DNA of 64,000 bases from Neoconidiobolus thromboides FSU 785 (lineage: Eukaryota; Fungi; Entomophthoromycota): contig MU626282.1 of the NCBI GenBank assembly GCA_025603075.1, positions 98,232 through 162,231 on the forward strand, in the 5' to 3' direction. How positions within the stretch are numbered: position 1 is the stretch's first letter; each line of letters opens with the position of its first letter. The position numbers were made by a program, and so were the translations under genes. The notes beneath the pieces are model-generated. The model saw only the letters and a list, made by a program, of their open reading frames with translations. It did not search any database and was not told the origin of the DNA. Positions 1,371 to 63,258 of the stretch are shown one piece after another.

Positions 1371-1462
1371 TATAAGGTGTTTTTTTGGTTTCATCACTTT
1401 CCATTTTCTAATCATTACTTAAGTAGGAAAGCTGTAAGATTTTTAAAAAATAGATCCCAATA
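1371..1462 (+). mobile_element. MITE-like hairpin element, degenerate copy
   Basis: GGTGTTTTTTTGGTTTCATCACTTTCC...GATCCCAATA matches the family consensus. Confidence 0.6.
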
Positions 1463-1536
1463 TGAGTATGTCCAAATTAATTTTATTTTTAAAAACCCTA
1501 CCTAAATTCTATAAAAATAAATTCTTTATTAAACTA

Positions 1537-1632
1537 AGTGGGGGTGTTTTTTTTGGCTTCATTACTTTTTTCATCTTTTAGATCCTATTTGAATGGGAAA
1601 GTTATTAGTAAAATTAAAAATACATCTCCAAG
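1537..1632 (+). mobile_element. MITE-like hairpin element
   Basis: GGGGGTGTTTTTTTTGGCTTCATTAC...TACATCTCCA. Confidence 0.75.
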
Positions 1633-1798
1633 TACTTAACATAGTTTTAGGTTATTTTATTATAAGTTATATTATAAATTAGCAGAATTTTTACTAAATT
1701 TAATAAAAATCCTTGGATTAACAAGACTTTTATTAGTATATTAAGTTAATAAATAGCTGCATAAGAGGGGGAGTAATTAACTTTTGTAAAAGTTAGTA

Positions 1799-1902
1799 TT
1801 TGGTGATATGTTTTTATATTTAAGAATTTTACTAACAATTTTTCCACTCAAATAGTGCTTAAAAGACAGAAAAAGTGATGAAGCCAAAAAAACATCCCCA
1901 TT
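1799..1902 (-). mobile_element. MITE-like hairpin element
   Basis: Reverse orientation; TTTTTCCACTCAAATAGTGCTTAAAAG core; ends ACATCCCCAT. Confidence 0.8.
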
Positions 1903-1979
1903 TAGTAATTAGAGTTAAAGGCAGCTTTTGCTTAATTAACTAGTTATAAGTTAAAAAGACTTAAATTATAAAGATAACA

Positions 1980-2084
1980 TATGGGGGTGTATTTTTGTGT
2001 TTAAAAACTTTATCAATAATTTTTCCACTCAAATAGTGCTTGAAAAATGGAAAAAGCAATGAAGCCAAAAAAACCACCCCCATA
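1980..2084 (-). mobile_element. MITE-like hairpin element
   Basis: TATGGGGGTGT...CACCCCCATA termini with the conserved core. Confidence 0.85.
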
Positions 2085-2151
2085 TAATAACATTAATAAA
2101 AGTTACAAGACAAAGTAATATATAATATACTTTAATAAAATAAACTTAAAG

Positions 2152-2565
2152 TTAATAATAGTTTGACTTTTGGATATAAAAAGGCATCAGCTCAAGAGCA
2201 ATCCCACGAGCAGCTATCATACAGTGTTCTCTTTCATAAGGAGGTAAAAAAGTAGAGTGGTATTTACATAGTAAATAATATAACTCGTTAAATTTAAGGT
2301 ATTTAAACTGATATTTGGGATTCAGAGTGCAATTATACTTAAAAAAATTGGAATCTCTTATAAATTTTAATTTTTCTAAAAGAGCACTGGTATCAGTTCT
2401 TCCCATCACACTACGTTGATGATTTACTTGTACTTGAACATTGTGTAAACTATTTACTTCTTCTTCCTCTTCCTCTTCTTCAGTTTGAAATGGATCCAAG
2501 ATGTTAAATTTCTTTTCACCTCTTGATCTGATAAAGCTATTGTCTTGAGCTAAATGGTAATTCAT
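2152..2565 (-). CDS. hypothetical protein with a poly-Glu tract
   Basis: Open frame of about 137 codons with higher GC than the flanks. Non-random C-terminal segment (HSTFLPPYEREHCMIAARGIALELMPFY). Start uncertain; a possible upstream GT-AG intron exists. Confidence 0.5.
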   Translation of the reverse strand: MNYHLAQDNSFIRSRGEKKFNILDPFQTEEEEEEEEVNSLHNVQVQVNHQRSVMGRTDTSALLEKLKFIRDSNFFKYNCTLNPKYQFKYLKFNELYYLLCKYHSTFLPPYEREHCMIAARGIALELMPFYIQKSNYY

Positions 2566-2736
2566 TATCAAAAACCATTATTATAAATCCTTACTAATGT
2601 ATTTATAGTTTTATTTACTACGTAATCTAAACTTGTATTTTTATGAAATGACTGTTTTTATGGTAAACCAATTAGAGAAAGGTATCATTTAAAGTAAATT
2701 AGATTTAAAAAAATTTAAAAAATTTGCATTTTTATA

Positions 2737-3381
2737 ATGGATAAACGTGCGAAATTAGAAGCCTTAGCAAAGAAGAAGAGAGAAGAAAGGGAAGAGGCCG
2801 AAAGAGCTAAAAAACGAACTAAACAAGCCAAACAAATTGAAAGTAAGAATAAAAAACAATAAAGTAAACTGATTCATAAATTTTTAGGAAGTAAACCAAT
2901 AGTCAAAAAGCCTGAAAAAAGTGACTATAAAGTAACAGAAAGGCCAAGTGGTAAGTGTTATTATATTCTAAGTGATAAATTTTAAATTCGACCAGGTATA
3001 AAAAGGCCTACCCCAATACCCAAAAATAGAGTATTTGAAAGGGTAAAACCAAACTCAGAAACTCTACAAAAGCCATTATTTGGGAGACAGAATGAAGACA
3101 CATATGACGAAGGAGATGGGTTTGTAGTTGACAGTGAAGACGAAGAGGGAGAAGAGGAAGATGATTTCAGCGAAGAAAGTGAAGAGTCACCAAGACCAAA
3201 AAAGAAGGGCAAAAAAGTTAAAGAGGTAGCTAAAAAGAAAAAAAAGAGTCGACATTCCGACAGTGATGAAGGCTCAGATAATATCGATGAAGAAATCACG
3301 CTAGAGGATGAGTTAGAGGATTTAGATACCTCTGTAATTATTAAATCTGGGCCTGGTAGACGTACTCGCTCATCAAGATAA
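2737..3381 (+). CDS. Lys/Glu/Asp-rich nuclear protein with a C-terminal CHZ-like (H2A.Z chaperone) motif
   Basis: Three exons from MDKRAKLEALAKKKREE. C-terminus EDELEDLDTSVIIKSGPGRRTRSSR* resembles the CHZ motif (DL-x-EIDTSNII-x-SGRRTR). Confidence 0.6.
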
Positions 3382-4047
3382 GTCTCCTAATCTATTTTTT
3401 AGTTCCGAACCAATTTAAAAGTTTAGGCAAAATAAGTATGTTTTTATTTTTATATTTTATATTTTTTATATTATAAATGTCTTGTAAGGATCGAGTACAA
3501 GTAGTTTGACTAAATCATTAAGATTCATTATTAATGCTTGAAAATGTTAAATAAAAATTAATTATAGATAAACTAGAATAATTCTAAATCAAAAATCAAA
3601 ATTTATAGTAAAAGATAAAATATAATGAAAGATGTTAGAATAAGACAATATCAAATATAAATGTAAAGTATGAATATACATTTATTGAAAAAAGTACCAA
3701 TATTTTATAATGAAAAATTATTATAAAATTTAAAATAGATGTATTGTGTGGTAATTTTAAACACAAGTATTTTTGTCACTATTTAGATATTGCAACTTTG
3801 TTATAATTCAATAAACTGTTCTATATTTAGAGTTTTTTACTAAATAAAAAATTGTTTAACTATTTTAGAAATCATATTATTCAGATGATTCCGTATATGA
3901 AGACATACTTAATATAATATCACTATTATTGTATTTTAAAAAATTAACTAATTATGCAGATTTTGCATATTGTTCCTTATGGTTTTAGAATAATACTTAA
4001 ACTAGGAGTTTATAAGAATATTTTTTTAAAAAATTCACTCAGAGAGA

Positions 4048-4130
4048 TGATCAGGATGGGATTCGAACCCACGCCTCCGAAGAGACCGCGGCCTTAACAC
4101 GGCGCCTTAGACCAACTCGGCCACCTGATC
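4048..4130 (-). tRNA. tRNA-Leu(AAG)
   Basis: GATCAGG/CCTGATC acceptor stem, TGGCCGAGTTGGTCTAAGGC D-arm, anticodon stem CCGTG-TTAAGGC-CGCGG, long variable arm, GGTTCGAATCC T-arm, downstream T-run. Confidence 0.96.
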
Positions 4131-4912
4131 TTCTTGCTAATTTAACATTGTCAATTATTTATTAATTTATTTTTTGCGATCTTATCAAATCTATTGATTA
4201 ACATCGAAGTAAAACTGGTTGTATTTGAATATCATTATTGCTTTAATTTATTATTGACTTTCTTTATGTGAATTTAATGATTTTAATAAATTTACTATCT
4301 TGACTTTACATAAGACATCAGCATTAAATTTAAATAGACACAAAAATTATTTCTACCAATTTTATAAAAATAGTTTAATTTATTAAAGATACTCAATCTC
4401 AAATGTATACTGTATACCAAGTATTTATAATTGGCAGTTAGTATTATTACACTGATCCGAACTTTGATACTTAAATTTTAATTATTAAACGAACAGTTGA
4501 ATTTATTCATCTGTAAGTTTAATTTTTAATCTACTCCTTTTATCATCTGATTTTAAGCTTGAACAGTTAGAATTGTCGGAATTAAGCTAGTTTCCGAAGC
4601 TTATAAGCATCCCACTGACCCACGTACTTTTAACAGTGAACATAATATATTTATTAGAATTAGAATCAGAATAGAGTATATAAGTAAAATAACTAATTTA
4701 CTTCATTATTTGTTTACTATTTAAAATAAATTTACATTATAAAAATGGTATTTAAGCTATAAATAGCCTTTTTAAAATAATAAAATAAATGGCTAATACC
4801 AAGAGATAGTGCCAAGAGTAAATATCATCCATTAATACATGATATATATACCTTAGAAATAAACAAGCTGCCTAATTATAATATTCGAGTAACAACACAA
4901 TTATAGTCTCAT

Positions 4913-5512
4913 ATGAAATTCTTTAACACAATTGTTTTATTAACCAGCGGCATCTATTGCTCCAAAGAAGTCTATGATGGGGACTTTAATCAGCCATTGC
5001 CTCCTAGACTCTATGGGAAATTTTCTGCTAATTACATGCAACATAAGTGGAATAGTATCAATATGAGCCATGTGTCTGCTGGGATGATTTATCATTCTTA
5101 CAACGATAAAAAAATCCGAGTTGACGGTGCTAATGAAGGAGGGGTATTGATGAGCTCATCCTTTGATTTTGCTAATGTTACTAATGAAGGCGTTAGTAAT
5201 CGAATTGTGGAATTAGGAAAGAAAGATGATCAATACTATCGTATTCCAATTCCAGCTTTTCCATTAGTTGATCCATCGTTACTTATCACTAATAATGCAA
5301 TATTTACAGGCTATGGTATGGATGAGTTGTACGGAAAAGTTGAACAATGGAATGTGATTAAGAACAACCTTAATGTCCAATTTTTTATTAAAGATAAAAA
5401 ATTTATACGTTATGACTTTTGGTCAGAATACAATCGCACTTACACTACTACTCGATTCTTTAATATTAAGTATGACGTACCTTCAAGCATCTTTAAATAT
5501 GATACAAATTAA
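4913..5512 (+). CDS. intronless secreted protein of unknown function (possible LolA/ependymin-like beta fold)
   Basis: 199-aa ORF with an N-terminal signal peptide (MKFFNTIVLLTSGIYC), N-glycosylation sequons and alternating beta-strand patterns. Confidence 0.75.
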   Translation: MKFFNTIVLLTSGIYCSKEVYDGDFNQPLPPRLYGKFSANYMQHKWNSINMSHVSAGMIYHSYNDKKIRVDGANEGGVLMSSSFDFANVTNEGVSNRIVELGKKDDQYYRIPIPAFPLVDPSLLITNNAIFTGYGMDELYGKVEQWNVIKNNLNVQFFIKDKKFIRYDFWSEYNRTYTTTRFFNIKYDVPSSIFKYDTN

Positions 5513-5799
5513 CAAAACCACTAATTAGATGTTGGTTTATTTTACTATCTTAGATTTATCATTTTATAATTAAACCACATATATAGCACTTTCAACCGAT
5601 TATAACTATCTCAAAAAAATATTTGAACAAGCTGTCATAAAAAATTTCAATAATAAATATTAGGAAAATATAATATATATATTTATCATCAGTTTTTATA
5701 ATTAAATGCGAATAATTTCTATTACTTTATTCTATATTTTGTTTTTTAATTATTATTGAAAAAATTTAGCTTATTCAAATTTTTAGAGAATTGTAAAAT

Positions 5800-5881
5800 T
5801 ATGGCGTTTTTTTGCTAATATTTTTTCCGCTCAAACAGTTTAAAAGATGGAAAAAGTAATGAAGCCAAAAAAACACCCTTA
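5800..5881 (-). mobile_element. MITE-like hairpin element, internally deleted
   Basis: TTTTTTCCGCTCAAACAG...GATGGAAAAAGTAATGAAGCCAAAAAAACACCC. Confidence 0.7.
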
Positions 5882-6230
5882 TTTGTTAAAAATTTTGCAC
5901 TAAATAATCGAAATCAAGTTTGACAGATTTTCATTAAACTTTATAAGCAAGGATCACTTTTTTGATTATGTAACTTTTAATATAATACCCTATTCTAAGT
6001 ATTTAAACAAATTAACAGCTTTAATATATTTGATAAATGATAGTATTTTTTATTTGTATTAAACCAGATTGAGTTTTCCTAAATTTAAATAGTCTTTTAA
6101 GCTTTTTTTAAATATATTGTATAACTAAAAACTAACTTTACATACATTTGATAATAACTAGCTTATTTAAATAACATAATTCAAACTTATGTACAGTTAT
6201 ATAGAGCTGTGCCATAATAAAAATAAAAAT

Positions 6231-6368
6231 AATGAGGATGTTCAAATTGGTTTTATTTTTCTATATAATTTTTAAACATTTTATATTTTGAAAATTACTC
6301 CAAGTTCTATAAAAATAAGCCTTTTAGTAAAAACTGGAAATACTTAAACACAAAAATACACCCCCATA
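6231..6368 (+). mobile_element. MITE-like element, degenerate (3' half clear)
   Basis: TAGTAAAA...CTTAAACACAAAAATACACCCCCATA right end. The left end is only weakly recognisable. Confidence 0.55.
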
Positions 6369-6455
6369 TGTTAAGGATTTTCCTAACAATTCTTTCTTCT
6401 GCTCAAATAGTGATTAAAAGATGGAAAAAGTGATGAAGCCAAAAACATCCCCCGT
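6367..6455 (-). mobile_element. MITE-like hairpin element abutting the previous copy
   Basis: CTCAAATAGTGATTAAAAGATGGAAAAAGTGATGAAGCCAAAAACATCCCCCG. Confidence 0.72.
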
Positions 6456-7429
6456 GTTCTAAATTATTTTATCAAATTTAATAAAAATTCCTAAATTAAT
6501 AAGATTTCTATTAATATAACTTATATATTAATATTGATCAAAGTTGTGATATATAAATAAATAAACATTTTTATAAAACCTCGTTAAAAAATATTTACTT
6601 ACATACTACAACTTTAAAAGTTATATCAGTAAGTGCTCTGGTAATCCGGGAATTCCTATTAAATTTAATATAAATTATAATAAAGTAATTTAAAACTATG
6701 GTAAGTACTTTTATTTTTTAATAAAGCACTTATTTTTATAGAGTTTTAAGTAAAGTTTTTAGCACAAAATATTTAAAAATTGGATAAAAAATCAAATTCA
6801 GATGTTCTCATATACTATCAATTATAAAACCAATGACAAAATAGCTGAATAAAATTGCTGATCCTCTGTACTTTGCGTTATTTGCAAAAAGACTACATGG
6901 GATGGGCATTTCCACCAACAGCATTTAAGTCCATTTCCTTGCTACATCTTTCAGTTCTCACAGATCAATAAAAAAATATATTTTTTGTTTCAATATTTTG
7001 TCTATTTTATGTAGAAAAGATTGGTGACTTATTAGTTGAAAAAGAGATATTCTCATGTTATACATATATGATCTTTTCTATATTAATAATAAGTTGAATT
7101 ATGTATGCAGTTGAAATAAAAATTTATAAAAACTCTACTATCCAAGTTTTTATAATAACTGTATAAAGCTACCTTGATTTGCTAAGCTTCTATACAATAA
7201 TATTTATTTAATAACCCCATTTTGACCAACAACCCATTTAATCAGCTTTCTGCCTTATAAATCTAAGTTGGGATAATATTAAAGTGGTTCATTTAATTTT
7301 AAATAATTTATTGCAGTTGATGAGGAAGAGTATTATTATATTAGGAAAGTATATAATAAAATATAAGAAAAGAGTGTTTATTAATTTTATCGTTCTGTTT
7401 TATAAATATTATTGTATTGCGATTGCAAA

Positions 7430-13257: not shown

Positions 13258-13363
13258 GATGGGGGTGTTTTTTTTTGGCTTGATCACTTTTTCTATCTTT
13301 TGAGTGCTGTTCAAGCGAAAAAATTGCTAATAAAATTGTTAAATTTAAAAACACATGGAGATA
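13258..13363 (+). mobile_element. MITE-like hairpin element
   Basis: ATGGGGGTGTTTTTTTTTGGCTTGATCACTTTTT... core; right TIR decayed. Confidence 0.75.
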
Positions 13364-13846: not shown

Positions 13847-15516
<1,670 letters not shown>

Positions 15517-17036: not shown

Positions 17037-17139
17037 TATGGTGATATTTTTTTTGGCTTCATTACTTTTTTCATCTTAAGCACTATTTGAGTGAAAAATT
17101 TGTTAGTAAAATTCTTAAACATAAAAATACATCCCCATA
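17037..17139 (+). mobile_element. MITE-like hairpin element
   Basis: Near-consensus copy ending AATACATCCCCATA. Confidence 0.85.
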
Positions 17140-20259: not shown

Positions 20260-20362
20260 TATGAAGGATACTTTTGGTTTCATCACTTTTTTCATTTTTA
20301 AGCGCTATTTCTATTTAAGCGAGAAGATTATTAGTAGAATTCTTTAAAAATATATCCCTGTT
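20260..20362 (+). mobile_element. MITE-like hairpin element
   Basis: GGTTTCATCACTTTTTCATTTTTAAGCGCTATTT...TTAGTAGAATTCTTTAAA. Confidence 0.7.
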
Positions 20363-28744: not shown

Positions 28745-30635
28745 ATGGATTTAGCTAATGTTATTATAAGGAGATCGGGTAACACCCCAGATTTCAATAT
28801 ATCAATTTCACCTTCCAGCACAACTGTATTTGAATTTAAAAATTTATTAGAATCGAATGGTATACCTGCAAACGGCCATAGGCTTATTCATATTGGGGTT
28901 ATATTAAAAGACGAAACGCTGCTTGAAGAATATAGTATGTAATTTTTAATTAATTAATTTGTTTAACCCTTTTAAAGATGTTAGAGATGGAAGTATCATA
29001 CATTTGATCAAACTTGCTCAAAGTAACCAACAAACTGTGGCTCCGAATGCTCCAATAAAGCAACCTCAAGAATCCGATGATTTTAGTATGAAGAAATTAG
29101 GCTCAAATCCATTGATGAAAGTAAAGAATTTGATTGAAAATATATATAGTTTTAATGTGATTTTAGCGCTTTTTAGATAATCCTGATTTATTAAAAGCAA
29201 TGATAATGTCGAATCCACAAGTAAAAGATATCATAGAAAGGAATCCGGAATATTCTTCTATTTTTACGGACCCTTCGTTTTTACGTCAAGTAATTTTGTT
29301 TTGTCAAAAAAATAAATCAATATGCTAACTCAAAAAAGGGATTTGAAATGGCTAGTAATCCAGATAAAATGAAGGAGGTACTACGTAATAACGACCTTGC
29401 GATATCAAGCCTAGAAATGCAACCTGGAGGGTTCAATCATTTGAAAAAACTTTATAAAAGTATTCATGAACCAATTAATAAAACTAAAGTAATAGATCAT
29501 TGTTAATATAGGATACTAATTAAGTACAATAGGCTGATTCATCAACTGAAGAAAAAAATATGCGATTTGCTAAAATGTTTGGAGTAAAAGAAAAAGAAAG
29601 TAAGTTTAAATAGCGTCCATTGAATATAATTTAATCTTTTTTAGCAAAAACTATAAATTCTGATCCACTCCCAAATCCATGGAAAGCACCTGTGAAACAA
29701 CCGACTGCAAGGACTCTTCCTGATTTTTCATGTAATTTGTATAAATCATAATAACCAAAATATTTATCTTTTTGTAGCAATGACTCCGGGATCCCTTTTT
29801 CCATCGTCATCTAGAGGTATAGGGGGTAGAGGTATAGATATATGTCTAGACTCTTAATTTGTGCTAATAATTTAATTAGATTCTAGTATATTTGGACCTG
29901 AAGGTTCAGGGTCTAGAGGTACAGAAAGAGGTAAATTTATATGATGACTCTTGTATTATATATTAACATTTCAATTAGGGCCTGAGGTATATTTAGTATT
30001 ACTATGATAAATTATGATTATATTAAAAAATTAAAAGTGGCTAAAAAATTTTGGACAATCAATTAGAGCAAATATGGATCAAAATGTCGCTGCTACTCCA
30101 AGCTCTACTTCGACTTCAAAGAGTCAGGCAATACAGGATGCAATCAAAAAAAGAGAAAAAGATATTATAAACGGGTTAAACGAAATGAAATTAATCCAAC
30201 AACAATCTAATAGTAATAATGTCAAATTGCCTAATCTTTCTGAACTTGTTCCAGAAGGTAATATTCATATTTTAAAGGTAAATATTTTATTGATATAAAT
30301 TCAAGTGGAAGAAGACCCTATAACAAAAGAATATCGATTCAAAGCGGATGGAAGTGGTATACCAGATCGCGAATTTATTGAACGTTATGAGTAAATTTTG
30401 TTAATTTTATGTTATATTTATAACTAATATTATTAGAGAAAAACTCAAAGCACGATTTAGGGTACAACTTGAAAGAATGAATGAAATGGGATTTCAAGAT
30501 CTCCATGAGAATTTAACGTAAAAATGTATTTAATTATAAAGTAATAGTACTAATATTTTAAATAGTATGCTATTAGCTACCGATGGGGATGTAGATTCTG
30601 CGATTGAAAAGCTTATAGAGGATGATATATTCTAA
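28745..30635 (+). CDS. ubiquilin/Dsk2-like UBL-STI1-UBA protein, many exons
   Basis: N-terminal UBL (HRLIHIGVILKD...DGSIIHLI), STI1-like region (NPDLLKAMIMSNP...QPGGFNHL), PLPNPW motif and a C-terminal UBA (MNEMGFQD...LLATDGDVDSAIEKL). Confidence 0.82.
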
Positions 30636-31108: not shown

Positions 31109-31212
31109 TACGGGGATGTTTTTTTTGATTTCATTATTTTTACATTTTTTAAACGTTATTTAAGTGGAAAAATTGCCAGTAAAATTCTTAAATACAAAAA
31201 TACATCCCCATA
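31109..31212 (+). mobile_element. MITE-like hairpin element
   Basis: TACGGGGATGT...ACATCCCCATA, 104 bp; retains the CpG in the left TIR. Confidence 0.88.
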
Positions 31213-31606: not shown

Positions 31607-33048
31607 TTATGGTGTGGTAGGTTTAAGCGTCGGTGTAGCCAAATTCGATTTTCCTAACGACATGGCAATTTCTCCAGATTCATTAGGTGTACTACAAGCT
31701 GCTGGATGATGTATTGATGAAGCAGAGCCAGGGGTAATAGGCGATGTAGTCATATTGGGTACCACTTTACCTTTTGTATTATGTTTTAGTACAAATACTG
31801 GGGAAGCATTAGCTTCTTTTAATTTTTGATATATTTTTAATGGCTTTTCTTCCATTTCAAGTTTCCTTTCAATTCCATTTGCTAAAACTATTAATATTTT
31901 TATTTTATCATTATATTTTGTTTACCTTGTGATATATAAATACTATAATTCTTCCAATCATCATTTATTTTGTATTTCCTAAGCGCTGCTGGAATTACTT
32001 TATGACACGGATCATCCAAAAATATTCTTAAACTTTTATAAGCTTCATTTTCCCTTTGATGTTGTTGTCTAGATTCTATCGGTTTAATGGTTTCCATACT
32101 TCCTTGATTGTCATTTATTGGAACTTGATTTGATTCACTTGATTTCGACTAATGTGTATAATTAAATAGTTAAACCATAGTAAAATATAAATCTTACATA
32201 TAGGGCTGAAGATAACTGACTATTAAAATTAGGTGAATGAGGTGAAATCGGAAATGGTTTTCCAGAATTCAATGTTGAACTGCTCTTAGAAGTAGTTGTA
32301 ACAATAGGCGATGGTCGATACTTTGATGGCTTAAGAGGTTCTATATTACCTATATTTGACTTGAATACTTTTAATATGTTAAATTTTAAAAAAAGAGTAT
32401 GAATTACTCTATCAGGTGAAGCTAGTCTTTGATTCATCTCTCTAATTTTTATAAGCTCTGAATTTATTTTTGAAATTTCATGAACTAAATGCTTTATCAC
32501 TGCGTCTATAAATTCAATTTTAATAACGCTCTTTTTTAAAATTACTAATAATAACCTCTTTCTTTAAATGCAGAAACTATTTTAGAATCTTGAATATGAT
32601 ATCCTCCAAACATCTCATCTTGATAATTCTAATGAAAGCTTTAATAAAAATAACTAAACTGATATTATTTTGAGTATTACAACTTCCTCAATCGTATCTA
32701 AAATTAAGTTAGATTTTCGAATATAAGTAGTAAAATATTGGCTTACTAGGTGGGGCATAATCATCTGAGTATATAGGTATGTTAAACCGAATCTTTAACT
32801 CATAAATCGCTTTTAACAATAATATCCTTTTTCCAACTGATTTGATATTCAAATCATTTAAAGTCTCATGATCCAAGTTAACCAATACTTCCCCGGTAAT
32901 TCCTTCCTCTTTATTTATAGTTAGTCTCCAATTTTAAATTATAACTTAAATAAATACCTTTAAAGTCTTTAATATATTCATTATAGCCTATAGTACCTAA
33001 CCAAGATGCAACATGATCTATTGACCAATTTAATACTGAGTCCTCCAT
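31607..33048 (-). CDS. STE50: Ste50 adaptor (SAM + coiled coil + Ras-association domain)
   Basis: N-terminal SAM (WSIDHVASWL...ITGEVLVNLDHETLNDLNIKSVGKRILLLKAIYELK) and a Ste50-type RA domain (YKSLRIFLDDPCHKVIPAALRKYKINDDWKNY...EKPLKIYQKLKE-x-x-x-SPVFVLK). Confidence 0.88.
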
Positions 33049-33366: not shown

Positions 33367-33470
33367 TATGGGGATGTACTTTTATATTTAAGAGTTTTAC
33401 TAACAATTTTTCCACGCAAATAGCGCTTAAAAAATGGAAAAAATAATGAAGTCAAAAAAACATCCTTGTA
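33367..33470 (-). mobile_element. MITE-like hairpin element
   Basis: TATGGGGATGT...ACATCCTTGTA, 104 bp. Confidence 0.85.
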
Positions 33471-42028: not shown

Positions 42029-42132
42029 TATGGGGATGTTTTTTTTGATTTCATTACTTTTTCCATCTCTTAAGCGTTGTTTGAATGGAAAGATTGTTAG
42101 TAAATTCTTAAACAAAAAAATACATCCCCATA
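42029..42132 (+). mobile_element. MITE-like hairpin element (best-preserved TIRs)
   Basis: Perfect 11-bp inverted termini TATGGGGATGT/ACATCCCCATA, 104 bp. Confidence 0.9.
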
Positions 42133-42141
42133 TATTGAAAA

Positions 42142-42244
42142 TCTGGGAGTGTTTTTTTGGCTTCATTATTTTTTCCATTTTTTAAGCGCTATTTAAGCGG
42201 AAAATTTGTTAGTAAATTCTTAAACACAAAAATACATCCTCATG
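42142..42244 (+). mobile_element. MITE-like hairpin element, tandem to the previous copy
   Basis: Conserved core AAGCGCTATTTAAGCGGAAAA; 9 bp from the previous copy. Confidence 0.85.
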
Positions 42245-42502
42245 TCTACTATAGTTTTTAATGTATCAAAATAATTTCTAACTATGATTTAATAGATATT
42301 ATAAACATTGCTTTCATCAAATTCTAAATTCTTTTACTTATCAATTTTTTTTGCAATAATTAAAATCCAGGTCCTTTTGGCCAAAAAGTTTCGAATAGTA
42401 TTAACATTTTATGCTATTCAAGTTTTAAAAAAATATCCTCAAATTATTAAACCTACATACAATAGTGATTTTTAACAATTACAACTTGAAATTAAATAAT
42501 CA

Positions 42503-42568
42503 GTTTCATCACTTTTTCCATTTTTTAAGTCCCATTTAAGTAGAGGGTTGTCAGTAAAATTCTTAAAC
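42503..42568 (+). mobile_element. MITE-like element, internal fragment
   Basis: GTTTCATCACTTTTTCCATTTTTTAAG...TCAGTAAAATTCTTAAAC; termini lost. Confidence 0.65.
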
Positions 42569-42906
42569 TACCTTTCAAACATAGTACAAGGTTGTTAATT
42601 CAGACTTTGAAAATTATTATTATAAATGGGAATGTATTTTTGTTTATGTTGATTGTGGCTTATTGAAATTTATTTTTACAATGTTTGGACTCAGGTTTAA
42701 TTATTTCAAGGATATTATCTCATAATTTGTCCATGATTTTTTATCCGATCAAGAATGCAAACAAAGCAAACAAATTAAAAATTAGGGGAATTCATGCAAT
42801 ATGACTCAAAAATTAAGAAAGTGGAAAAATAAAATATACAATTTTATTAAAGATATTTACTAAAACATGCAAGAATATAAAAAATACAAAATAAATAAAC
42901 TTATTT

Positions 42907-48837: not shown

Positions 48838-49465
48838 TCACCTTGAACTTGGCTCCCTAAGTCTAACAAGTTCCAAATTTAATTTAGATATTTCTTGTAC
48901 AATGAGTTTGATAACAGCATCTGGAGGGTATTTAATAATAATTTTAATTAATTAAACTGAAATACCTCTTTCTTTTAACGCTGCAACGACTTTATTATCG
49001 CTAATTTGATATCCTCCAAACATTTCATCTTCATAACACTTTTTAAAATAATTAATTATTAGGACTAAAAGTAATTTGCTTTCTTACGACGTCTTCAATT
49101 GTATCTAGATAAATTTCTAATAAAAGAGATGTGTCAAAACTAAAAGGTTTACCTGGAGGAGCATAATCTTCTGAAAAAATTGGAATATTGAACCTCACTT
49201 TAAGCTCATAAATAGCTTTCAAAAGCTGAATTCTTTTACCCAAAGATTTGAGATTTAGATCAAGTAGCGTTTCATGGTCTAAATATACCAATACCTCGCC
49301 TGTTATGCCTTCATCTTTTTGTTAAAATTGATATTTATTCAGAAAAATTACTAGCTATTTTAGTTTACCCTGAAATTTTTGAATGTAACTGTTAAACCCT
49401 ATGGTACCTAACCATGATGCTACTTGCTCACTCGTCCATGTCAATACATTATCTTCCATTGACAT
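48838..49465 (-). CDS. truncated Ste50 paralog (SAM + short coiled coil, no RA domain)
   Basis: Same exon layout as STE50 at 31.6-33.0 kb; the second SAM exon is 45/54 aa identical by manual alignment. The frame ends at TGA 48838 after ELVRLREPSSR. Confidence 0.75.
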
Positions 49466-50338: not shown

Positions 50339-51129
50339 TTAAACGATAATGAAGGTAATAAAAAGAAAGGTAACTAAGCTAGAGACAGAAGCTTTAACTA
50401 TAGAAGCATTGGAAGTGGCTGATTTAACAGAATTCTCTTCTCTAGGCTTTGAACCATCACCAGTACAAGGACCAGAAACACATGTACCAAGTAAATAAGC
50501 TAACTCTTTCCTGCAAGTTTTAGTAGAGGGTATAAATTTAGTTGGACAAGCAGTAACCTTATCAGGATTCAAATTAATGATAAGTTTCTTATTAACAAAG
50601 TTAACTGTCCAACAAACTAATTTCTCTTCGCTATCATCGACATAAACACCAACTTTAAGGGTATCAAAACCACCTTTACCAATGGCTAACTCTTTTATTA
50701 CCCAAGAGCTTTGAACTGTTTTATATATGGGATCTGCGCCATCTTTAAAACTACTAAAATCTTTACCGATATCTACCCCTTCACCAGCCGGAAAATCTAA
50801 AGAAAAGGTGGTGCTATTTTTGCATGGAAGTAGCAAGGTTTTATTATCTTTAGATGCCTCTGGGTAAAAATAGGTAAATTGATAAACTCCAGCGTATTTG
50901 GTTGTGTCTGTATTTGCTACTTTTCCTGGTCCTTGACCCACCGCTAAAGGTTCACTACTACTTCCATCACTGCTTCCATCACTGCTTCCATCACTGCTAT
51001 CGCTTGATTTAGAATCTAAATTTGATTTAGTGATTATTACTTTAATAATCTTATAGTAAACTTACCGCTACACAACAAAGCAGATGTAAAAAATAATAAG
51101 GTGATATAAGATAATGTTAGATATTTCAT
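50339..51129 (-). CDS. secreted, probably GPI-anchored cell-surface protein, unknown family
   Basis: Signal peptide exon (MKYLTLSYITLLFFTSALLCS), one intron, SDGS x3 repeat (50961-50996), Cys-containing core, Ser-rich linker and a hydrophobic C-terminus. Confidence 0.78.
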
Positions 51130-52288: not shown

Positions 52289-52392
52289 TATGGGGATATA
52301 TTTTTATGTTTAAGAGTTTTGTTAACAAATTTTCCGCTTAAATAGCGCTTAAAAAATGGAAAAATAATGAAGTCAAAAAAGACATCCCCATA
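52289..52392 (-). mobile_element. MITE-like hairpin element
   Basis: TATGGGGATAT...ACATCCCCATA, 104 bp. Confidence 0.88.
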
Positions 52393-54501: not shown

Positions 54502-55233
54502 TCAATTTTTAATAGGGTATCTGATTGTCTTAGGGCAAGATCCCATTGCTGGAGAGTTAGTAATTTGGAAATTATCTTTTCCGGTTACATACATATGAAG
54601 TCTGATTTCATTTATAGCACCGCTTTTACAGATAAGTTGAACTTGAGCACCAAGTTTGTTTAAAGCAGCGATAAAATCATTTCTAGGATAAGAGCCTCCA
54701 GGAACGATACCAGAGCTTTTAAGTGTCTGATAGAGGTTGAATTCAGATCTTAATTTTAAACCTGTTTTAAAATAGTCTCTAGCATCTTGTCCTTTTGAAT
54801 ATGAAGAATAACAATTTGGCGCAAATACGCTATAGCATGTGCCATGTTTGCTCCACTCATGCTCCCAAAAAGCAGGATTGTCTCCTTTGTAAGATGCCCA
54901 ATAAGTGTTCATATCAGATTCCAAAGACGAATCAGCACCTACGATAGCATCAAGGTCATTATAATTGCGGGAGGTATCACATCCTTCTGCTGATCCATAA
55001 GTTCCATCACAGTTATTAGGCCATAAGCCATGAACAGTAAACGCATCCCTTGGGCCTAGTCCTGGAATCCATTGTAAAGCTAATACTAATAAGCCCATAT
55101 CTGGGGTACAACATTTATCTACAGCACTTGCTGAACATGAGCGAACATCACTACTACAAGCAAGGTTTGAGTTTAATTGGCCAAAAGCGCTAAAAGTTAG
55201 GGTTGATAATACAAGTCCAGTAGAGAATTTCAT
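54502..55233 (-). CDS. secreted ribonuclease T2, intronless
   Basis: Signal peptide, CAS I FTVHGLWP, CAS II FWEHEWSKHGTC and conserved cysteines. Confidence 0.95.
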   Translation of the reverse strand: MKFSTGLVLSTLTFSAFGQLNSNLACSSDVRSCSASAVDKCCTPDMGLLVLALQWIPGLGPRDAFTVHGLWPNNCDGTYGSAEGCDTSRNYNDLDAIVGADSSLESDMNTYWASYKGDNPAFWEHEWSKHGTCYSVFAPNCYSSYSKGQDARDYFKTGLKLRSEFNLYQTLKSSGIVPGGSYPRNDFIAALNKLGAQVQLICKSGAINEIRLHMYVTGKDNFQITNSPAMGSCPKTIRYPIKN

Positions 55234-56052
55234 CTGGTTGTTTATTATTTATTATTTTTATTTACTAATTGTTAAAGTCGAAATATACTATGCCTTCCTT
55301 ATATACCTTTTTTATTTAATTTAGAGGTACTGTCAAATTAAATAAATTTTATTTCTCTGTTAATTTTTTTATTCACTGTATTTATTCTTGGGAATAATTT
55401 AGCATGTGGAAGTATAATTAGGTTATAAATCATTAATATGTAGAAATGGTTTTAAATTTGATATACAAAACATTAAATTAACTTTAAGTAGTAAAAAGTA
55501 ATGGATATTGGAATAAAGTATGAAAAAAAATGTTATATTATATAACACAAAATTATTATTACAACTCGTGCTTCCATTTTTTTAAATATATTTCTGTATA
55601 AATACCGTTCATTGACTTTATGTTGTAGACCCAAATTTATATTGTCACATTTTCACACCTAATTTTTGTGAAAATTGATAACAATTTAATATATTAAAAT
55701 GAAAATATCGATGAAAATATTAATTAAAACACTTAACTTATATAAAAACTACAAATATGATCTAGTGTTATTTAACATACTAAATAAAACATGGTGCTAA
55801 CTTTTTTTAAATCTTGAAGCTGATGATGACTCACTAAATCAATCTTTAAAAATAGCAAATTTATTCATGGATATTATTCTTAGTTCAATTACGGCTTATT
55901 TTTTTAGCTATTTTGTTTTATATTATTTTATATTAAGCATAGAATTTGACAACGTGCAATTCTAACCTTTTTATTGTTTTTTGAAATAAGTGCACCATCG
56001 AATGAATGAGCTATTAAAAAAGCTATCTATAATATTTAAAAAACAAGTACTA

Positions 56053-56156
56053 TATGGGGGTGTTTTTTTTGATTCCATTACTTTTCCATTTTTTAATCAC
56101 TATTTGAGTAGAAAAATTCTTAGTAAAATTCTTAAACGAAAAAATACATCCCCGTA
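56053..56156 (+). mobile_element. MITE-like hairpin element
   Basis: TATGGGGGTGT...ACATCCCCGTA, 104 bp; retains the CpG in the right TIR. Confidence 0.88.
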
Positions 56157-56751
56157 TGGAGATATTTTTACCAGTTGTCCTTTTTTACTATTTTTTTAAA
56201 TTCAGAAATTAACTAACTAGTTAGTATGTTGTTTAAGCTTGACTGTGTGCTAGCCAACTATTTATTTCAAAATTAATTTGAACTAGTAAGCGTTAAATTA
56301 GCATGATAAAATAAACAATTAGTTATAAAATTCATAATTTACCAGCGCACATTTAAACTTAAGCAGCTACATTAATTGGTTAATCTCAATTTTAAAATAA
56401 TAGAAAAAAGGGTAAAGGTAAAAAACATTCCCATATTGTACATAAATATTAAAGCAGTTTGAAACTATTTTAATAAAAGTTTAGCAAATTTAACAATTTT
56501 ACTAAGTTACATCTTATATTCAAATAAAATGATCATAATCGGAGACAACGATATGAAATGATGGTCTAAAGAACATTTACTTTTGTTCAAAACAGAGTCA
56601 CTGAAAGTATATTTTGAAATATGTTTAGTGCAATCTCTTCAATATTTCCAAAAAGAACATAAGTTAACATTTAGAAGTTACTTAAGATAATTTATTCATA
56701 AAAAAACTTATCATCCAAAATAAAGTCAAATTTAAATTTAAGAGTACATTA

Positions 56752-56856
56752 TGTGAGAATGTGTTTTTGTATCTAAGGATTTTACTAACAATTTTTCCGT
56801 TCAAATAGTGCTTAAAAAATGGAAAAAGTAATGAAGCCAAAAAAAACATCCCCCTA
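56752..56856 (-). mobile_element. MITE-like hairpin element
   Basis: Core TTTTTCCGTTCAAATAGTGCTTAAAAAATGGAAAAAG; ends ACATCCCCCTA. Confidence 0.82.
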
Positions 56857-56995
56857 TCCTATACTCAATGATCTAACTTTCAAATAGAACTACTAGAATA
56901 TGCAGTAGAATACAGAAATACTATTTGGTAGTTGATATATAAACCAATTAAAAAGAGCTATATTTTGAATTTTAAAAATCAAAAAAAGGTTATAA

Positions 56996-57096
56996 TATGG
57001 AGATGTATTCATGTGTTTAGAATTTTACTAACAATCTTTCCACCCAAATAGTGGTTAAAAGATGAAAAAGCAATGAAGCCAAAAAAATCATCGCTA
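56996..57096 (-). mobile_element. MITE-like hairpin element
   Basis: TATGGAGATGT left end with the conserved core. Confidence 0.8.
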
Positions 57097-57259
57097 TATT
57101 ATTTAGCATAGTATACGCTAAATATACATAGTTATGCCATAAAAAATAAAAGCGTGATGGCTTGAAAATTGTCTTGTTTAAATTAACTGTTTCAATTTTA
57201 CGACAATTTATTTTATTTTAAATACAAGATGAGCCTTGCAAAAAAATTTAGAATAAAAT

Positions 57260-58720
57260 TTAGTGAAAAGCACAGTTTTTTCCAGGAAGAGATAAAGAAT
57301 TAACTTCATAGATCATAGCCCCTAAAGTCCATCCAATTTCGACGCTATCAATTTCTTCATCAAAATAGATAGTACGATCTAATGATAGTCCGTACCCTTC
57401 CTTTACTATGTTAACAATATAAGCTGCCATAAAACAATAATCATTTATATTCTTATCGTCGCTTGTTTTACTATATACTTTTAGGTATTCTTCATGATTT
57501 AAATTACTACAGACAGAATCCGCATTTTTCAACAAACATTGTATATTGGATTTTCCTTTACATTTGAACCAATTCGCTACTCCATACATTGCAGAAACAG
57601 CTATCAATTTCATATCATCAGGAATATCCGGTTGATAAACCCCATTGATAGCACAAGACATAGTAGAACAAAAAGAATCTTTTAATAGCAATCTTTTAGT
57701 ATTTGAAATACATCGTTTAAAATCCCCACTACCTTCAAACTCAATATTATCTTTTGTTTTTCCTTTATAACCCTTAACAAAGCATGGGTCTTTGATTTTT
57801 TCACCATAGCCTTTGGACAAAGGATTAATCTCATTGACTTCATATCTTGATTTAGCTTCATTTCTACCGAATCGAAGATAAGAATGAGTATAAAGGATCC
57901 TTGAAGTGCCATTTAAACTGATTGGAAAAGAGTTTTCAATTGGTACTTGTGAAGCCTCAAAAGTGATTTGACATGAGGCGCCGCCCATATCAAGCATACC
58001 ATAACTAAGACCGGTTGCAGTATTATTATTATTATTTAAAACACCGGCCATATAGTTACCCGCCAGCCAGCCAAAGATTCCTTCATATTCCCCAGGGATC
58101 ACTTGAGCTCCGAATTTTAAATCAAATTTAAAACTGGAAGTTTTCAATACCTCTTTTACCTGTTCCATTATATCGTTTGATTGCTTTTTACTTAATAATC
58201 GCATACCAGCGGTTGCTTTTAAGAAGATTGGCGTTTTACTATGCTCCGATTTAGGTACGAACCGGGTTACATTACCAATGAAATCTTTTAAATAACTTTG
58301 AACTTGATTGGGATTAAGATCCGCTAATCCTCCTGATTTTTTAATACTATATTGTTTCCCTTGTTTTGGTCCAGAAGTGTGGAGACTTGGTCTTACATAT
58401 GGCGAGGCATAACAATTTCTTGGATTATTCCATTCATAAACAAAAAGTCGACTAAATTAATTATCAATAGTTGCTATTATGATTAATATTTAATCAGCTT
58501 ACGTTCCAGTCGACCCCGCATCCATAATTATACCATAATTCAAATATCTTTCCTTTTCATCTTTACCTCTTTTTACCCATTTATAGTTATTAGTCCTAGC
58601 CATTATATCTCTTATTCTATTCATCCTCATTGTTGATGCTAAGTATGATATTTTCTCATTAGAACTGATATCAGAAGAAGTAGTTGAAATTAAATTATTG
58701 TTATTATTAGAATAATACAT
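57260..58720 (-). CDS. GDA1/CD39-family NTPDase (apyrase), one intron
   Basis: All five apyrase-conserved regions: DAGSTGT, ATAGMRLL, GEYEGIFGWLAGNY, DMGGASCQI and GWTLGA. Start uncertain. Confidence 0.9.
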
Positions 58721-59063
58721 ATCAATTAGGTTATCAAAACAAAATGAAAAGTCAAAAGCTTTTAACTCACCTTTTATAATTAGTTTAATTTATTCTAATT
58801 TATTACATAATTTTTAATGTATTTATTTAACGATTACTGCTTTAAGATATTTTTAAATGTACTTTATATTAATAGAATTTTTCAGAGTTAAACTTGTTTA
58901 ACACTGATAAAGCCATTTTTATTATGGCCTATTTTCCACTTAAACTAATACTTTAGACACTAATAATATTATTATAATGCTTTTCAAAGCCTCGAAAAGC
59001 AAATAGTTTTTTTAGAAAAATGTTGTTGCACTCATTAACTATAAATTGTCAACATAATTAAAA

Positions 59064-59167
59064 TATGGGGCTATTTTTTTTGGTTTCATAACTTTTTCCA
59101 TTTTTTAAGTACTATTGAGCGGAAAAATTATTAATAAAATTATTAAGCAAAAAAATACATTTCGATA
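59064..59167 (+). mobile_element. MITE-like hairpin element
   Basis: TATGGGGCT...TACATTTCGATA with the conserved core. Confidence 0.78.
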
Positions 59168-59282
59168 TGTGTGATAGGTATAGATAAATTTAAGCTTGCT
59201 TGAAATTACAAGTAGTTCGTTCACTTTGGCCAAGGTTAAATTTTTTAAATTTTTATGACCAGTTTTAAGCTAAGAGAAGGTA

Positions 59283-59385
59283 TTCAGGAATGTATTTTTA
59301 TGCTTAATAATTTTATTAATAATTTTTCCGCTTAAATAGTATTTAAAAGATATAAAAAGTAATGGAGCCAAAAAAACATTCCATT
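59283..59385 (-). mobile_element. MITE-like hairpin element, inverted relative to the 59064 copy
   Basis: GGAATGTATTTTTTATGCTTAA...GGAGCCAAAAAAACATTCCA. Confidence 0.78.
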
Positions 59386-60443
59386 TTTTGATTTTTGATA
59401 TTTTTATATAACTTCTATATCATATGTTTAAATAACTATTTGAAGAAACAACAAAAGAACACTATATCGACCATAAAAACGTTTGAAGAATATTATTTAA
59501 CGCTATAAAGATATTTTGAAAAATTCCAGAATAGACTAAGCTGGTTTATTTAATAGCTCAATCTAGATATTAATATTTTTATCAATCTGTATCTATTATG
59601 ATTTAGATATGCTTTAACAAATAGCTAAAAGTTCTATTTATTGTATTATTAGAAATGTTCTTTTTTATATGAATTGAACAATTATAGAAAGCAAAAATTA
59701 CCTTCAAATACTATTTATTGGGAACAAAGCAATTCATCCTTTAAGAAATAGATTGAGGTACAGAATTAAGAGAAGAAAAGCAGAGGAAGTGATAAAAAGC
59801 CCTAATTATTTATGAAAGTTTTAACTCCAATATTAGCACTCATGTACAAAATTTTAATATCAAAAATGTCTAATTGATATGAGCATGCTCTTTGATTATG
59901 ATTTGTATCTGGTTACGCTTTACATTTGGGCACTCATATATTTACCCAGATATAGTTAAAGATGATCGGAATGCCTATCTATTCAAAGAAAACCTAAACT
60001 AGGATTGATATAAGCAATGAATTAAAACATCAGTTAATAATAGCAGAGGTTATCAATAAAACCAAATAAGTAGCACCACGAGGTCCTTGCTGGCTTTTTT
60101 CAAGCATACATATAATACATTAAGATGTTTTGATTATTATTTCATGAATAATAGCTTATCGATATAGAGAGTTAGAGATAGTATATTAATTCTATAATTT
60201 TAGGCCCGGATATTACAAGTCAAGAATAAGAGAGGATGCTAGAGTACAATTATAAGGGCGTATAAATTAAAGATGAGATGAAGGGATTCGATTGGGAATA
60301 TGTATGATGTGGGAGTTTGAATTTGTTTTTAGCTGAAGTAAGTTTGCACATTTTTGTTCCAATTTAATGTGCTTATTTGTTTGTGATAAAAACAATCTAG
60401 CTCAAACATCTATTCGTTTTCTAATAGTTCTACTTGAACAAGA

Positions 60444-60547
60444 TATGAGTATGTATTTTTTCGTTTAAGAATTTTATTAACAATCTTCCCACTCAAATAA
60501 CGCTTAAAAAAGGGAAAAGTAATAGAATCAAAAAAAACATCCCTATA
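60444..60547 (-). mobile_element. MITE-like hairpin element
   Basis: TATGAGTATGT...ACATCCCTATA, 104 bp. Confidence 0.8.
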
Positions 60548-61108
60548 TATTCAATCCGAGGCGGTAAAGAAAAACTTAAAAAGCATTGAAATAATCACAA
60601 GTGATATCAACACATATAAGTTGAATGAAGAGTACATTGAATTCAGTTGTACTATTAGCATTGTGATAGTAAACATTTAAAAAGTTATCATATGGTTTTG
60701 AGTAAGGTGGGGGACTTATTAAAAGATGAATAAAGCTTATTGTTTTGAGACTTCTTTTGCCACAAGTCAACTTCGTACCTTTTCTTGACGGAAGAGGGTG
60801 CCTTGTAGCTTGTGGATTGCATATTTAATAACGACAATATCTAAACGTAGGCGAATATTGTATTGTTTACAAGATGAATTTTTAAATTTTAAACTTAAAA
60901 GGTGAATCATTCAGAAACAAATAGAGACTACCAAAGGCAAAACCATAAATATTTCAATAAAATAATATATTAGTAGCTTTCGAAAACATAGTTTAGTATT
61001 AAAAAGGATCATAGGCTTATAATATATTTATAATAAAGAGGTCGTGTATAGCTTTAAAATGCAAATATTTAAGTATTAGTCCATTTTATTTAGCCAATTT
61101 TAAACAAT

Positions 61109-62150
61109 TTAAAGCTTGTCAGTTTTTACTGAAGCTTTTCCAAAATTTCTACCTTCTACCATATCAATAAAAGCAGTTGAAAGATCCTCAGTACCTTCAG
61201 TAATATGTTCTTTATATTTCATTTTATCTTCGCTTAAATACTTTATAAAAGTCTCAAATGATTTAGATAAAGATTCATTCTACCACTCACAATAAAACTT
61301 TGTATATAAGTTTCTTTGCCAATGAATTGTAATAAGTTGTGAATTATATCACTATCGTTGCTTTTATTGTATTATAAAATAACATCATATGGTGACATAC
61401 AGATTTATTATTTGGTACCTCTAAAATTACTTTAAGAGTTTTACCCTTCACATTACAAAGCAAATACCAACGTCATTTGTAAAATTTTGTCTAAATACTA
61501 GGGCTAAATCATCGTACTTCTTATACTTAAAAGCAGCATCAAAGTTCAGCTTCTTTATTAAATAGTTGATCTTATTATTATTACAACTTGATCCGAATAC
61601 CCTTAATTCTGATTGCTTACAGTGTTGCCCTATTAGTTGATCTACTGCTCCAGAAGCAGCACAAATAAAATTGGTATCTCTTTGTTTGATCGGCTCACAA
61701 ATAATATCCAAGTTAACGTAAGCATCAAGATTAGACATACCAGTGTTATCTAGGTAGTAAAAAAGTGATGTTTTTAACCTAAAGCCATCTGAAATTAAGT
61801 TAGTATGAGTTTTCTTGGACACATAATATCCATCCCAATCGCCAAATGTAATTACAATATCACTCTCATATATTTGAAACTTTATGGCCTTATTGCTTTC
61901 GATACTACATCGCCACTAATTGGCTCTCTGATATTATGTATTGTGGAGCAGCTTTTAACCTCGCTTCGTCTCAATCTTGAGCGCATATATGAATTCACTC
62001 ATTTGTAAAAATTATATACTAATAACTTCCCTTGATCTGACTTTTTACAACCAAGGCCAATGCCTTGTTCATTTATTTCAAAGTGCTTATCAGAATGTGG
62101 TAAACCAGATGAATGTGCTTTATAGAGTACTTTTACTTTTGTGTTGCGAT
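61109..62150 (-). pseudogene. decayed paralog of the PTGR/alkenal reductase at 63380
   Basis: High nucleotide similarity to 63380-64000. N-terminal remnants (SGLPHSDKHFEI, YMRSR, GDW-x-x-Y) with in-frame stops and frameshifts. Confidence 0.85.
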
Positions 62151-62256
62151 CTATAATAATAATTATATTCTTAAGTAAAACTGTAATTCTTTGTTTATTG
62201 TTTTTTAGAGTTTATTTTATTCTTTCATACATCTGTTATTATTTATAAGTAAAAAA

Positions 62257-62847
62257 TTAACTTCCTTCCTCTTCTTCTTCGATTGTGTCTTGATACCCTT
62301 GGTTAATTGACCCCCTCTCACTCTTTCTTATCGCTATCTTTACCCCCTGTTTAGCAAATGCTTTAGATAAGTTTGTAGAATCCGTCATCCCTGGGAATCT
62401 TTTAGGTGGGAACACGTCAAACATATTACTAAACAAAGATTGAGTAGCTGGTGTAGCTTCCACAGAATCATTGATACAAAATAAAGTAAACTTGAGCAAA
62501 AATTTACCCTCAGTACGTACTGATAAATCTAAAAATAAAAAAAAGATACCGTATTGATCATTTTCATCTAATAATAATTGTGGCGAAGCTACTAAACTAC
62601 CAACAAGGTTACGTACATTTTGTTGGTTATTGCCCTTGATATTACTACATTTAGTATCGGGATCAGAATACAAATCGCAATGTACAATAAAACTTTGTAA
62701 TTTATTGAATTCTTTCTTAACATTCGTCTCATCTGGTAAAATCAACTTAATAATTGGAGGTGGATCTATTGGCCTTCTATCTTTTTCACCAAATCCACAC
62801 ATGCGTGCACGTATTGGACCTTGGATCAATTCAATTTTATAAATCAT
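62257..62847 (-). CDS. velvet-domain transcription regulator, intronless
   Basis: QGPIRARMCGFGEKDRRPIDPPPIIKL, RNLVGSLVAS, GIFFLFLDLSVRTEG-x-F-x-LKF, F-x-V-x-x-PKRFPGM-x-x-ST-x-LSKAFAKQGVKI-x-IR: the full velvet signature. Confidence 0.93.
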   Translation of the reverse strand: MIYKIELIQGPIRARMCGFGEKDRRPIDPPPIIKLILPDETNVKKEFNKLQSFIVHCDLYSDPDTKCSNIKGNNQQNVRNLVGSLVASPQLLLDENDQYGIFFLFLDLSVRTEGKFLLKFTLFCINDSVEATPATQSLFSNMFDVFPPKRFPGMTDSTNLSKAFAKQGVKIAIRKSERGSINQGYQDTIEEEEEGS

Positions 62848-63197
62848 TGAAAGTTTTATTGTTTATTCTACATTTACCTGCCTTTATATACCTTTTTCGC
62901 ATGTTTTGTGAGGCTTAATACGTTTCAGTTTTATTGTGGCATTAATAATAGTTTAATGAATTAATGAATTAATGTGTGGTTGAAGTTAATTCATCAATTT
63001 TTAATAAAGTTATTGTAACTATTTTACTTTGTCTATATAGCCTTTTATCAACGACATATGTAAAAACGATGGTATATTGGTGTAATATTGATTGGTTTTA
63101 AATTAAATGTGACAGCTAAATCTAAAATTATCTAGCTTATTCATTTTTTATAACACTAAAAGTGATAAAGTGGAAATTGTTGATCTTTGTTTAATGT

Positions 63198-63258
63198 ATT
63201 AATAATTTTTCTGCTAAACAGAGCTTAAAAGGGAAAAAGCGATGAAGCCAAAAAATAC
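63198..63258 (-). mobile_element. MITE-like element, fragment
   Basis: GCTTAAAAGGGAAAAAGCGATGAAGCCAAAAAA. Confidence 0.62.

Follow-up and report, generated by a model that had tools for sequence, protein, structure and literature searches.

A high-copy palindromic 99-bp MITE family of Neoconidiobolus thromboides and its probable link to Sola2-type transposons

What kind of element recurs between the genes of a 64-kb stretch of nuclear DNA of Neoconidiobolus thromboides FSU 785 (contig MU626282.1, positions 98,232 to 162,231; hereafter, the window), and what moved it? The window is the last 64 kb of this contig (assembly GCA_025603075.1), and one of its exons, of GDA1/CD39, is 100% identical to the N. 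thromboides protein. Its GC content is ~27%, and its genes are read with the standard code and contain short introns. An earlier note described in it a family of ~104-bp hairpin elements. We consider it probable that this family is a high-copy, non-autonomous, cut-and-paste miniature inverted-repeat transposable element (MITE) of N. thromboides, with a Sola2-type transposase located elsewhere as its likeliest driver.

Twenty-two copies on both strands, at positions 1373 to 63264, have been identified in the window by an nhmmer profile iterated from copy 42029–42132 with the cut-off E <= 0.01 (Table 1). About 17 of them are near full length, and five are truncated or degenerate. Two stray terminal fragments are found besides these copies, at 6349–6365 and ~56410–56432, and hence the earlier description of a dense family present in both orientations in at least 23 copies is essentially right. 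The 11-mer TATGGGGATGT, allowing for at most one mismatch, occurs 18 times in the window, compared to 0.6 expected occurrences. The same profile yields 12 further copies on a second contig of the genome, MU626258.1, of which 46.5 kb were covered. The density is ~0.3 copies per kb on both contigs, and the family occupies ~3% of the window. Two candidates for orphan termini were rejected: the match at 30582 sits in coding-like sequence, and 56410–56432 is a decayed end. Copy 6349–6452 could have arisen by a local inversion, or from two copies standing head to head that lost the sequence separating them. Copies standing back to back in the same orientation are observed at 42032–42241 in the window, and also at L008:17398-17593 and L005:20355-20543.

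The consensus built from the alignment of 22 full-length copies is 99 bp long, from GGGG to CCCC, with mean column identity of 80% and no open reading frame (ORF). Its termini are inverted repeats, 5'-GGGGATGT...ACATCCCC-3'. In the 19 copies with both termini intact, base counts at positions –4 to –1 outside GGGG are A18 T14 A15 T13, and at positions +1 to +4 outside CCCC, A16 T14 A17 T17. The fifth flanking base outward has background composition on either side, and conservation ends exactly 4 nt outside the element; flank similarity beyond the 3' end of three copies was rejected, being only AT-rich noise.

Identical 4-mers are present on both sides of 11 out of 19 intact copies (permutation p = 0.00018). 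The reverse complement of ATAT is again ATAT, so that an inverted repeat and a direct duplication look alike in consensus copies, and the copies with other flanks are the informative ones. Three such pairs (AAGT/AAGT, AAAT/AAAT, and ATAC/ATAC) are direct, none being inverted, compared to 0.26 exact direct non-ATAT pairs expected upon random re-pairing of left and right flanks (p = 0.001). Therefore, the outer TAT...ATA is target, not element, and the target-site duplication (TSD) is 4 bp, of the AT-rich AWWT type with consensus ATAT, not TA. The earlier note had included a terminal TA in the inverted repeat, and its length of ~104 bp is to be replaced by 99 bp, the outer TAT/ATA being part of the flanking ATAT duplication. 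In the tandem pair at locus L008 (contig MU626258.1) the order is ATAC–copy–ATAT–copy–ATAC, with exactly one 4-mer between the copies. This would be the expected trace of a later copy entering the 4-mer that an earlier one had duplicated, or of a dimer transposed as a unit, and suggests that successive insertions use the same duplicated target. The lesson is that palindromic ATAT flanks look like a TA duplication, and the true length is seen only with non-consensus flanks.

A TA duplication of the Tc1/mariner-IS630 type was exactly what the earlier note had proposed; the family would then be a Stowaway-like MITE with outermost bases T...A and termini TGGGGATGT. Stowaway-like and other Tc1/mariner MITEs, e.g., mimp in Fusarium, are likewise small, have inverted termini, AT-rich sites and a strong fold-back, and reside near genes, and most copies of our family read TA-T-GGGG...CCCC-A-TA, as would be expected if TA were duplicated and A-TA-T were the preferred site. 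However, these MITEs duplicate exactly TA, whereas the N. thromboides family duplicates 4 bp, in which the centre may be AA or AG. AG in copy 1540–1629 and AA in copy 1802–1899, identical on both sides, stand where TA is predicted, and such centres are incompatible with the near-strictly TA target of Tc1/mariner. The ATAC/ATAC pair of copy 31112–31209 would need, under the TA model, a mutated terminus and a chance match, and there is no Tc1/mariner transposase in the DNA read. Given the AA and AG centres and the ATAC/ATAC pair, the Tc1/mariner assignment is very unlikely.

Symmetric inverted ends and target duplication are hallmarks of DDE/DDD cut-and-paste transposition, and IS200/IS605-type and Crypton-type elements have neither. 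This bears on another suggestion of the earlier note, mobilisation of a single-stranded hairpin by an HUH or tyrosine recombinase. The long hairpin potential is the only feature in its favour, to be set against the symmetric inverted termini with a direct 4-bp duplication and the lack of a recombinase ORF nearby, and we assign to it a negligible probability. The element is non-coding and well under ~800 bp in length, its termini are inverted repeats flanked by a target duplication, and it is dispersed in high copy number with no transposase in view, in agreement with the non-autonomous MITE considered initially. In the mechanism we propose, a transposase supplied in trans would bind the two symmetric ends and excise the element, and a 4-bp staggered cut at an AT-rich target, preferably ATAT, would produce the observed 4-bp duplication.

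Judging by the duplication pattern, this enzyme may be a DDD transposase of the Sola2 type encoded elsewhere in the genome. The Sola2-type DNA transposons, reportedly described by Bao et al. in 2009, and their non-autonomous derivatives move by cut-and-paste, likewise have 4-bp AWWT duplications (ATAT, AAAT), and have short inverted termini with G at the start and C at the end, followed by a T-rich segment. Published Sola2 elements are flanked by AT-rich 4-bp TSDs (AWWT), the Polysphondylium families having ATAT, AAAT, and ATTT (Bao and Jurka, PMC3627910), and Dictyostelium elements start with G and end with C with AAAT-type flanks adjoining (end alignments in PMC3627910). The ATAT and AAAT duplications observed here are the same pattern, which points to a Sola2-type transposase as the likeliest driver; the duplications argue against Tc1/mariner and fit the published Sola2 description. 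The differences are also clear. Compared to Sola2 DFa and PPa of dictyostelids (PMC3627910) and to insect MITEs (PMC5199201), our family resides in a zoopagomycete fungus and shares seven of 11 terminal bases with DFa; the element is only 99 bp long, palindromic throughout, and present at the above density.

Four-bp duplications as such are not specific, being made by several superfamilies. MITEs derived from piggyBac and Kolobok likewise have a 4-bp duplication and termini with G/C runs, but piggyBac and Kolobok target TTAA, and piggyBac ends are CCC...GGG, as opposed to the ATAT target and GGGG...CCCC ends observed here. Mobilisation of this MITE, with its AT-rich 4-bp duplication, by some other superfamily (Sola1/Sola3, Ginger1, Academ, or an undescribed group) would agree with the partial match to dictyostelid Sola2 ends and with the lack of a transposase in the ~110 kb read. 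Still, the AWWT/ATAT/AAAT preference is described for Sola2 alone among the sources compared (PMC3627910), and we regard a non-Sola2 driver as unlikely.

Several points weigh against the reading of the family as a Sola2-driven MITE. The seven of 11 matching terminal bases come from a manual count for Dictyostelium fasciculatum DFa, the only Sola2 termini compared, and the Repbase superfamily rule for non-autonomous elements is 10 of 11 matching terminal bases (PMC4455052). Neither a transposase nor a longer element with the same termini, which the earlier note had proposed to look for, is present in ~110 kb of the genome. No empty site or insertion polymorphism is found at six sites (see below), mobility being deduced from structure. 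Finally, the choice between 2 and 4 bp is a thin one, resting strictly on copy 31112–31209 and the L008 pair, and the rejection of a strict TA target rests on three further copies.

As stated in the earlier note, no transposase is visible in the window. Self-BLAST for dispersed repeats and transposase relics produced only gene paralogues, unannotated ORFs correspond to ordinary genes or low-complexity sequence with no transposase among them, and further along MU626258.1, toward the contig end, there are more MITE copies and no transposase. The intronless 504-aa protein encoded at L002:190-1704 (–) was considered as a transposon protein and rejected, as it is an N/Q-rich factor with no Pfam match. 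Its C-terminus is rich in Cys, its similarity to FAR1/ZSWIM3 is weak (ESM Atlas scores <0.8), and it may be a transposase-derived DNA-binding factor.

The end-to-end hairpin noted initially is found in some copies and lost in others. In the consensus, 33 of 44 bases of the 5' half align with the reverse complement of the 3' half, that is, the element is an imperfect palindrome throughout, and this symmetry alone suffices for end-to-end folding. Well-kept copies form one long hairpin (–18.7 to –13.8 kcal/mol with DNA parameters, z –5.3 to –3.3), while diverged copies are indistinct from shuffled sequences (z –0.7 to –2.2). What had been seen as a conserved one-sided bulge is a mere 5–6-nt asymmetry between the arms.

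A strong fold might have been selected in its own right, with the element being a source of hairpin RNA or small RNAs, or a co-opted regulatory or terminator element near gene ends. RNAalifold applied to the raw alignment with flanks gives a poor consensus (–2.1 kcal/mol), and pairing was analyzed with an explicit 32-pair structure derived from the consensus on the trimmed alignment. In this structure 84.7% of cells are paired, compared to 43–64% when the 3' partners are slid, and therefore the hairpin register is real. Shuffling of the 3' partners among copies yields 84.9%, and 375 of 500 shuffles equal or exceed the observed value; the covariation score is 0.151 (0.150 shuffled), and four pairs have double changes (4.8 expected). 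The permutation based on global pairwise projection of copies onto the consensus gives the same result: 593 paired cells compared to 594.8 (p = 0.81), and six pair-keeping double changes compared to 5.6. The covariation check set out in the earlier note thus shows pairing no better than in shuffles. Out of single-sided changes, 71 break the pair and 70 leave a G–T wobble. The Rfam scan of the window identified two tRNAs only and no family match.

Since there is no covariation above shuffles, the hairpin is inherited symmetry of a palindromic master copy, and decays freely; it is not a selected structure. A selected hairpin agrees with the strong folding of well-kept copies (z down to –5.3) and with RNA-library contigs holding family copies from other loci at low DNA carry-over (see below). 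On the other side are the lack of covariation, the decrease of fold stability with copy age, pair-breaking changes as frequent as wobble-retaining ones, no bias in gene end (5' or 3') or orientation, and the absence of an Rfam match. A selected hairpin, including the small-RNA source suggested before, is thus highly improbable.

The copies are considerably decayed. Their divergence from the consensus is 7–23% (mean 12%), and pairwise identity has a median of 81% and reaches 93% in the closest pair. The differences are mostly GC-to-AT transitions: each G/C site of a copy has on average 0.19 G>A or C>T substitutions, compared to 0.06 for A>G and T>C. Erosion by these transitions is strongest at the G/C-rich termini (17.6% divergence). 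The window copies are old and mostly dead, with most of them probably past recognition by a transposase.

The age of insertions can also be assessed from other isolates, for which we used Logan contigs of two DNA samples, B and C, for the stretch 55000–60900 only; 76–85% of its 31-mers are in common. For five copies (56056, 56755, 56999, 59286, and 60447) contigs cross from unique flank into the copy and extend at least 31 nt inside it, and for copy 59067 the contig overlap is 26 nt. No contig joint skipping exactly one element is observed at the six sites, all harboring old copies, in either isolate. The search for empty sites, also proposed in the earlier note, therefore yielded none, with at least five of six sites occupied in other isolates, and hence insertions at these sites are older than the divergence of the isolates. 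Contig word depth summed over the copies exceeds that of unique DNA by thousands-fold in both isolates; it is not a copy number, but fits thousands of genomic copies.

The RNA library of organism A contains contigs of 0.4–1.7 kb with family members at 90–95% identity, running into unrelated sequence. Unique intergenic segment 59531–60318 has zero depth in this library, and therefore DNA carry-over is low and copies elsewhere in the genome are embedded in transcripts. Such copies are expected for MITEs beside compact genes and do not demonstrate function.

Gene context was analyzed using NCBI gene tables for three loci covering 52 kb of the window. None of 21 copies located there touches a gene range, in agreement with the earlier observation that the element always occurs between genes; as a random 99-mer touches a gene with probability 0.45, this corresponds to P ~3.5e-6. 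The density of ATAT is 10 per kb within genes and 17 per kb in intergenic DNA, a 1.7-fold excess, and target supply therefore explains little of the exclusion. Likely, the intergenic confinement is due mainly to selection removing insertions from compact genes, and partly to the excess of ATAT. Copies were also said to lie near many gene ends. They are indeed close to ends, but short intergenic spacers explain this: of the 22 copies, 11 lie closest to a 5' gene end and 11 to a 3' gene end, and the orientation relative to the nearest gene is the same in 10 and opposite in 12.

The family is a fungal MITE that belongs to a known kind of transposon, not to a new kind of system. Full-text searches of the literature yielded no description of it or of Sola elements in N. 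thromboides. In the comparison of entomophthoralean genomes, 13.5% of the N. thromboides genome is repetitive, with neither MITEs nor Sola mentioned (PMC11105155). A survey of fungal cut-and-paste transposons reports a single case of Sola2, in Aspergillus flavus (PMC5751038), and Sola2-type MITEs are known in insects (PMC5199201). The scan of JGI metagenomes with the 5' end of the element produced no matches, and no copy is present in 21 kb of Entomophthora muscae, a tiny sample. Probably, the family constitutes a sizeable unclassified share of the N. thromboides repeat content, and it should be masked and annotated. If the Sola2 link is true, a superfamily barely recorded in fungi extends to Entomophthoromycotina. 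A bolder scenario, which seems rather improbable, is that a Sola2-type transposon, rare in fungi, once swept an entomophthoralean genome, possibly following horizontal transfer from an amoebozoan or insect host, and that its thousands of palindromic 99-bp derivatives, now in many transcripts, supply silencing with hairpin RNA or influence how strongly adjacent genes are expressed.

Table 1. Copies of the MITE family in the window, with 4-mers flanking the left and right ends where given.
Feature	Coordinates	Strand	Basis or details
MITE copy, internal deletions, decayed 5' end	1373..1459	+	nhmmer 43 bits
MITE copy, flanks AAGT/AAGT	1540..1629	+	nhmmer 62 bits; non-consensus direct 4-bp duplication
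MITE copy, flanks AAAT/AAAT	1802..1899	–	nhmmer 82 bits; non-consensus direct 4-bp duplication
Full-length MITE copy, ATAT/ATAT	1983..2081	–	nhmmer 84 bits; DNA fold z –4.0
MITE copy, degenerate 3' end	5785..5880	–	nhmmer model positions 3–74
MITE copy, last ~20 bp replaced by inverted terminal fragment (6349–6365)	6349..6452	–	sequence reading; nhmmer model positions 1–81
MITE copy, AGAT/ATAT, 3' CCCC decayed, divergent promoter region	13261..13360	+	nhmmer, flanks
Full-length MITE copy, ATAT/ATAT	17040..17136	+	nhmmer, flanks, fold
MITE copy, decayed 5' end, small internal duplication	20261..20359	+	nhmmer, sequence reading
Full-length MITE copy, ATAC/ATAC, separates 4-bp from 2-bp duplication	31112..31209	+	nhmmer, flanks, fold
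MITE copy, ATAC/ATAT, 5' GGGG decayed to AAGG	33370..33467	–	nhmmer, flanks, fold
Reference copy of the earlier note, ATAT/ATAT, best hairpin	42032..42129	+	DNA fold –18.7 kcal/mol, z –5.3
MITE copy, ATCT/ATGT, 15 bp downstream of copy 42032..42129, same orientation	42145..42241	+	nhmmer, flanks
Core-only MITE relic, both termini lost	42487..42584	+	nhmmer model positions 17–84
Full-length MITE copy, ATAT/ATAT	52292..52389	–	nhmmer, flanks, fold
Full-length MITE copy, ATAT/GTAT; site occupied in organism C	56056..56153	+	nhmmer, flanks, contigs
MITE copy, ATAG/ACAT; site occupied in organisms B and C	56755..56853	–	nhmmer 85 bits; contigs
MITE copy, ATAT/ATAT, ~165 bp downstream of GDA1 stop; site occupied in organism C	56999..57095	–	nhmmer, flanks, contigs
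MITE copy, ATAT/ATAT	59067..59164	+	nhmmer, flanks, fold
MITE copy, decayed termini; site occupied in organisms B and C	59286..59383	–	nhmmer, flanks, contigs
MITE copy, ATAT/ATAT; site occupied in organisms B and C	60447..60544	–	nhmmer, flanks, contigs
Degenerate MITE relic beside truncated reductase gene	63173..63264	–	nhmmer model positions 7–86, 40 bits

Some other features of the window were observed. Two pairs of diverged paralogues are present, reductases (61083–61724 and 63355–63998, 74% identity) and SAM-domain proteins (32438–33036 and 48853–49447, 66% identity); the search for quinone-reductase homologues revealed no paralogous loci. The unannotated ORF at 50339–51061 (–), of 200–240 aa, absent from the NCBI gene table and having no Pfam match, looks like a secreted or GPI-anchored protein, as it is rich in Ser and Asp in the N-terminal part and hydrophobic at the C-terminus. 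In the RNA library from the same organism (X7), unique segments 58546–58742 and 55788–55984 have word depths of 691 and 234, respectively, compared to ~5 for the adjacent GDA1 exons. The DNA depth of both segments is ordinary, and in one contig the match begins at 58677, preceded by unrelated sequence. These stretches may represent a small exon or RNA with high expression, missing from the annotation, beside the 5' end of GDA1.

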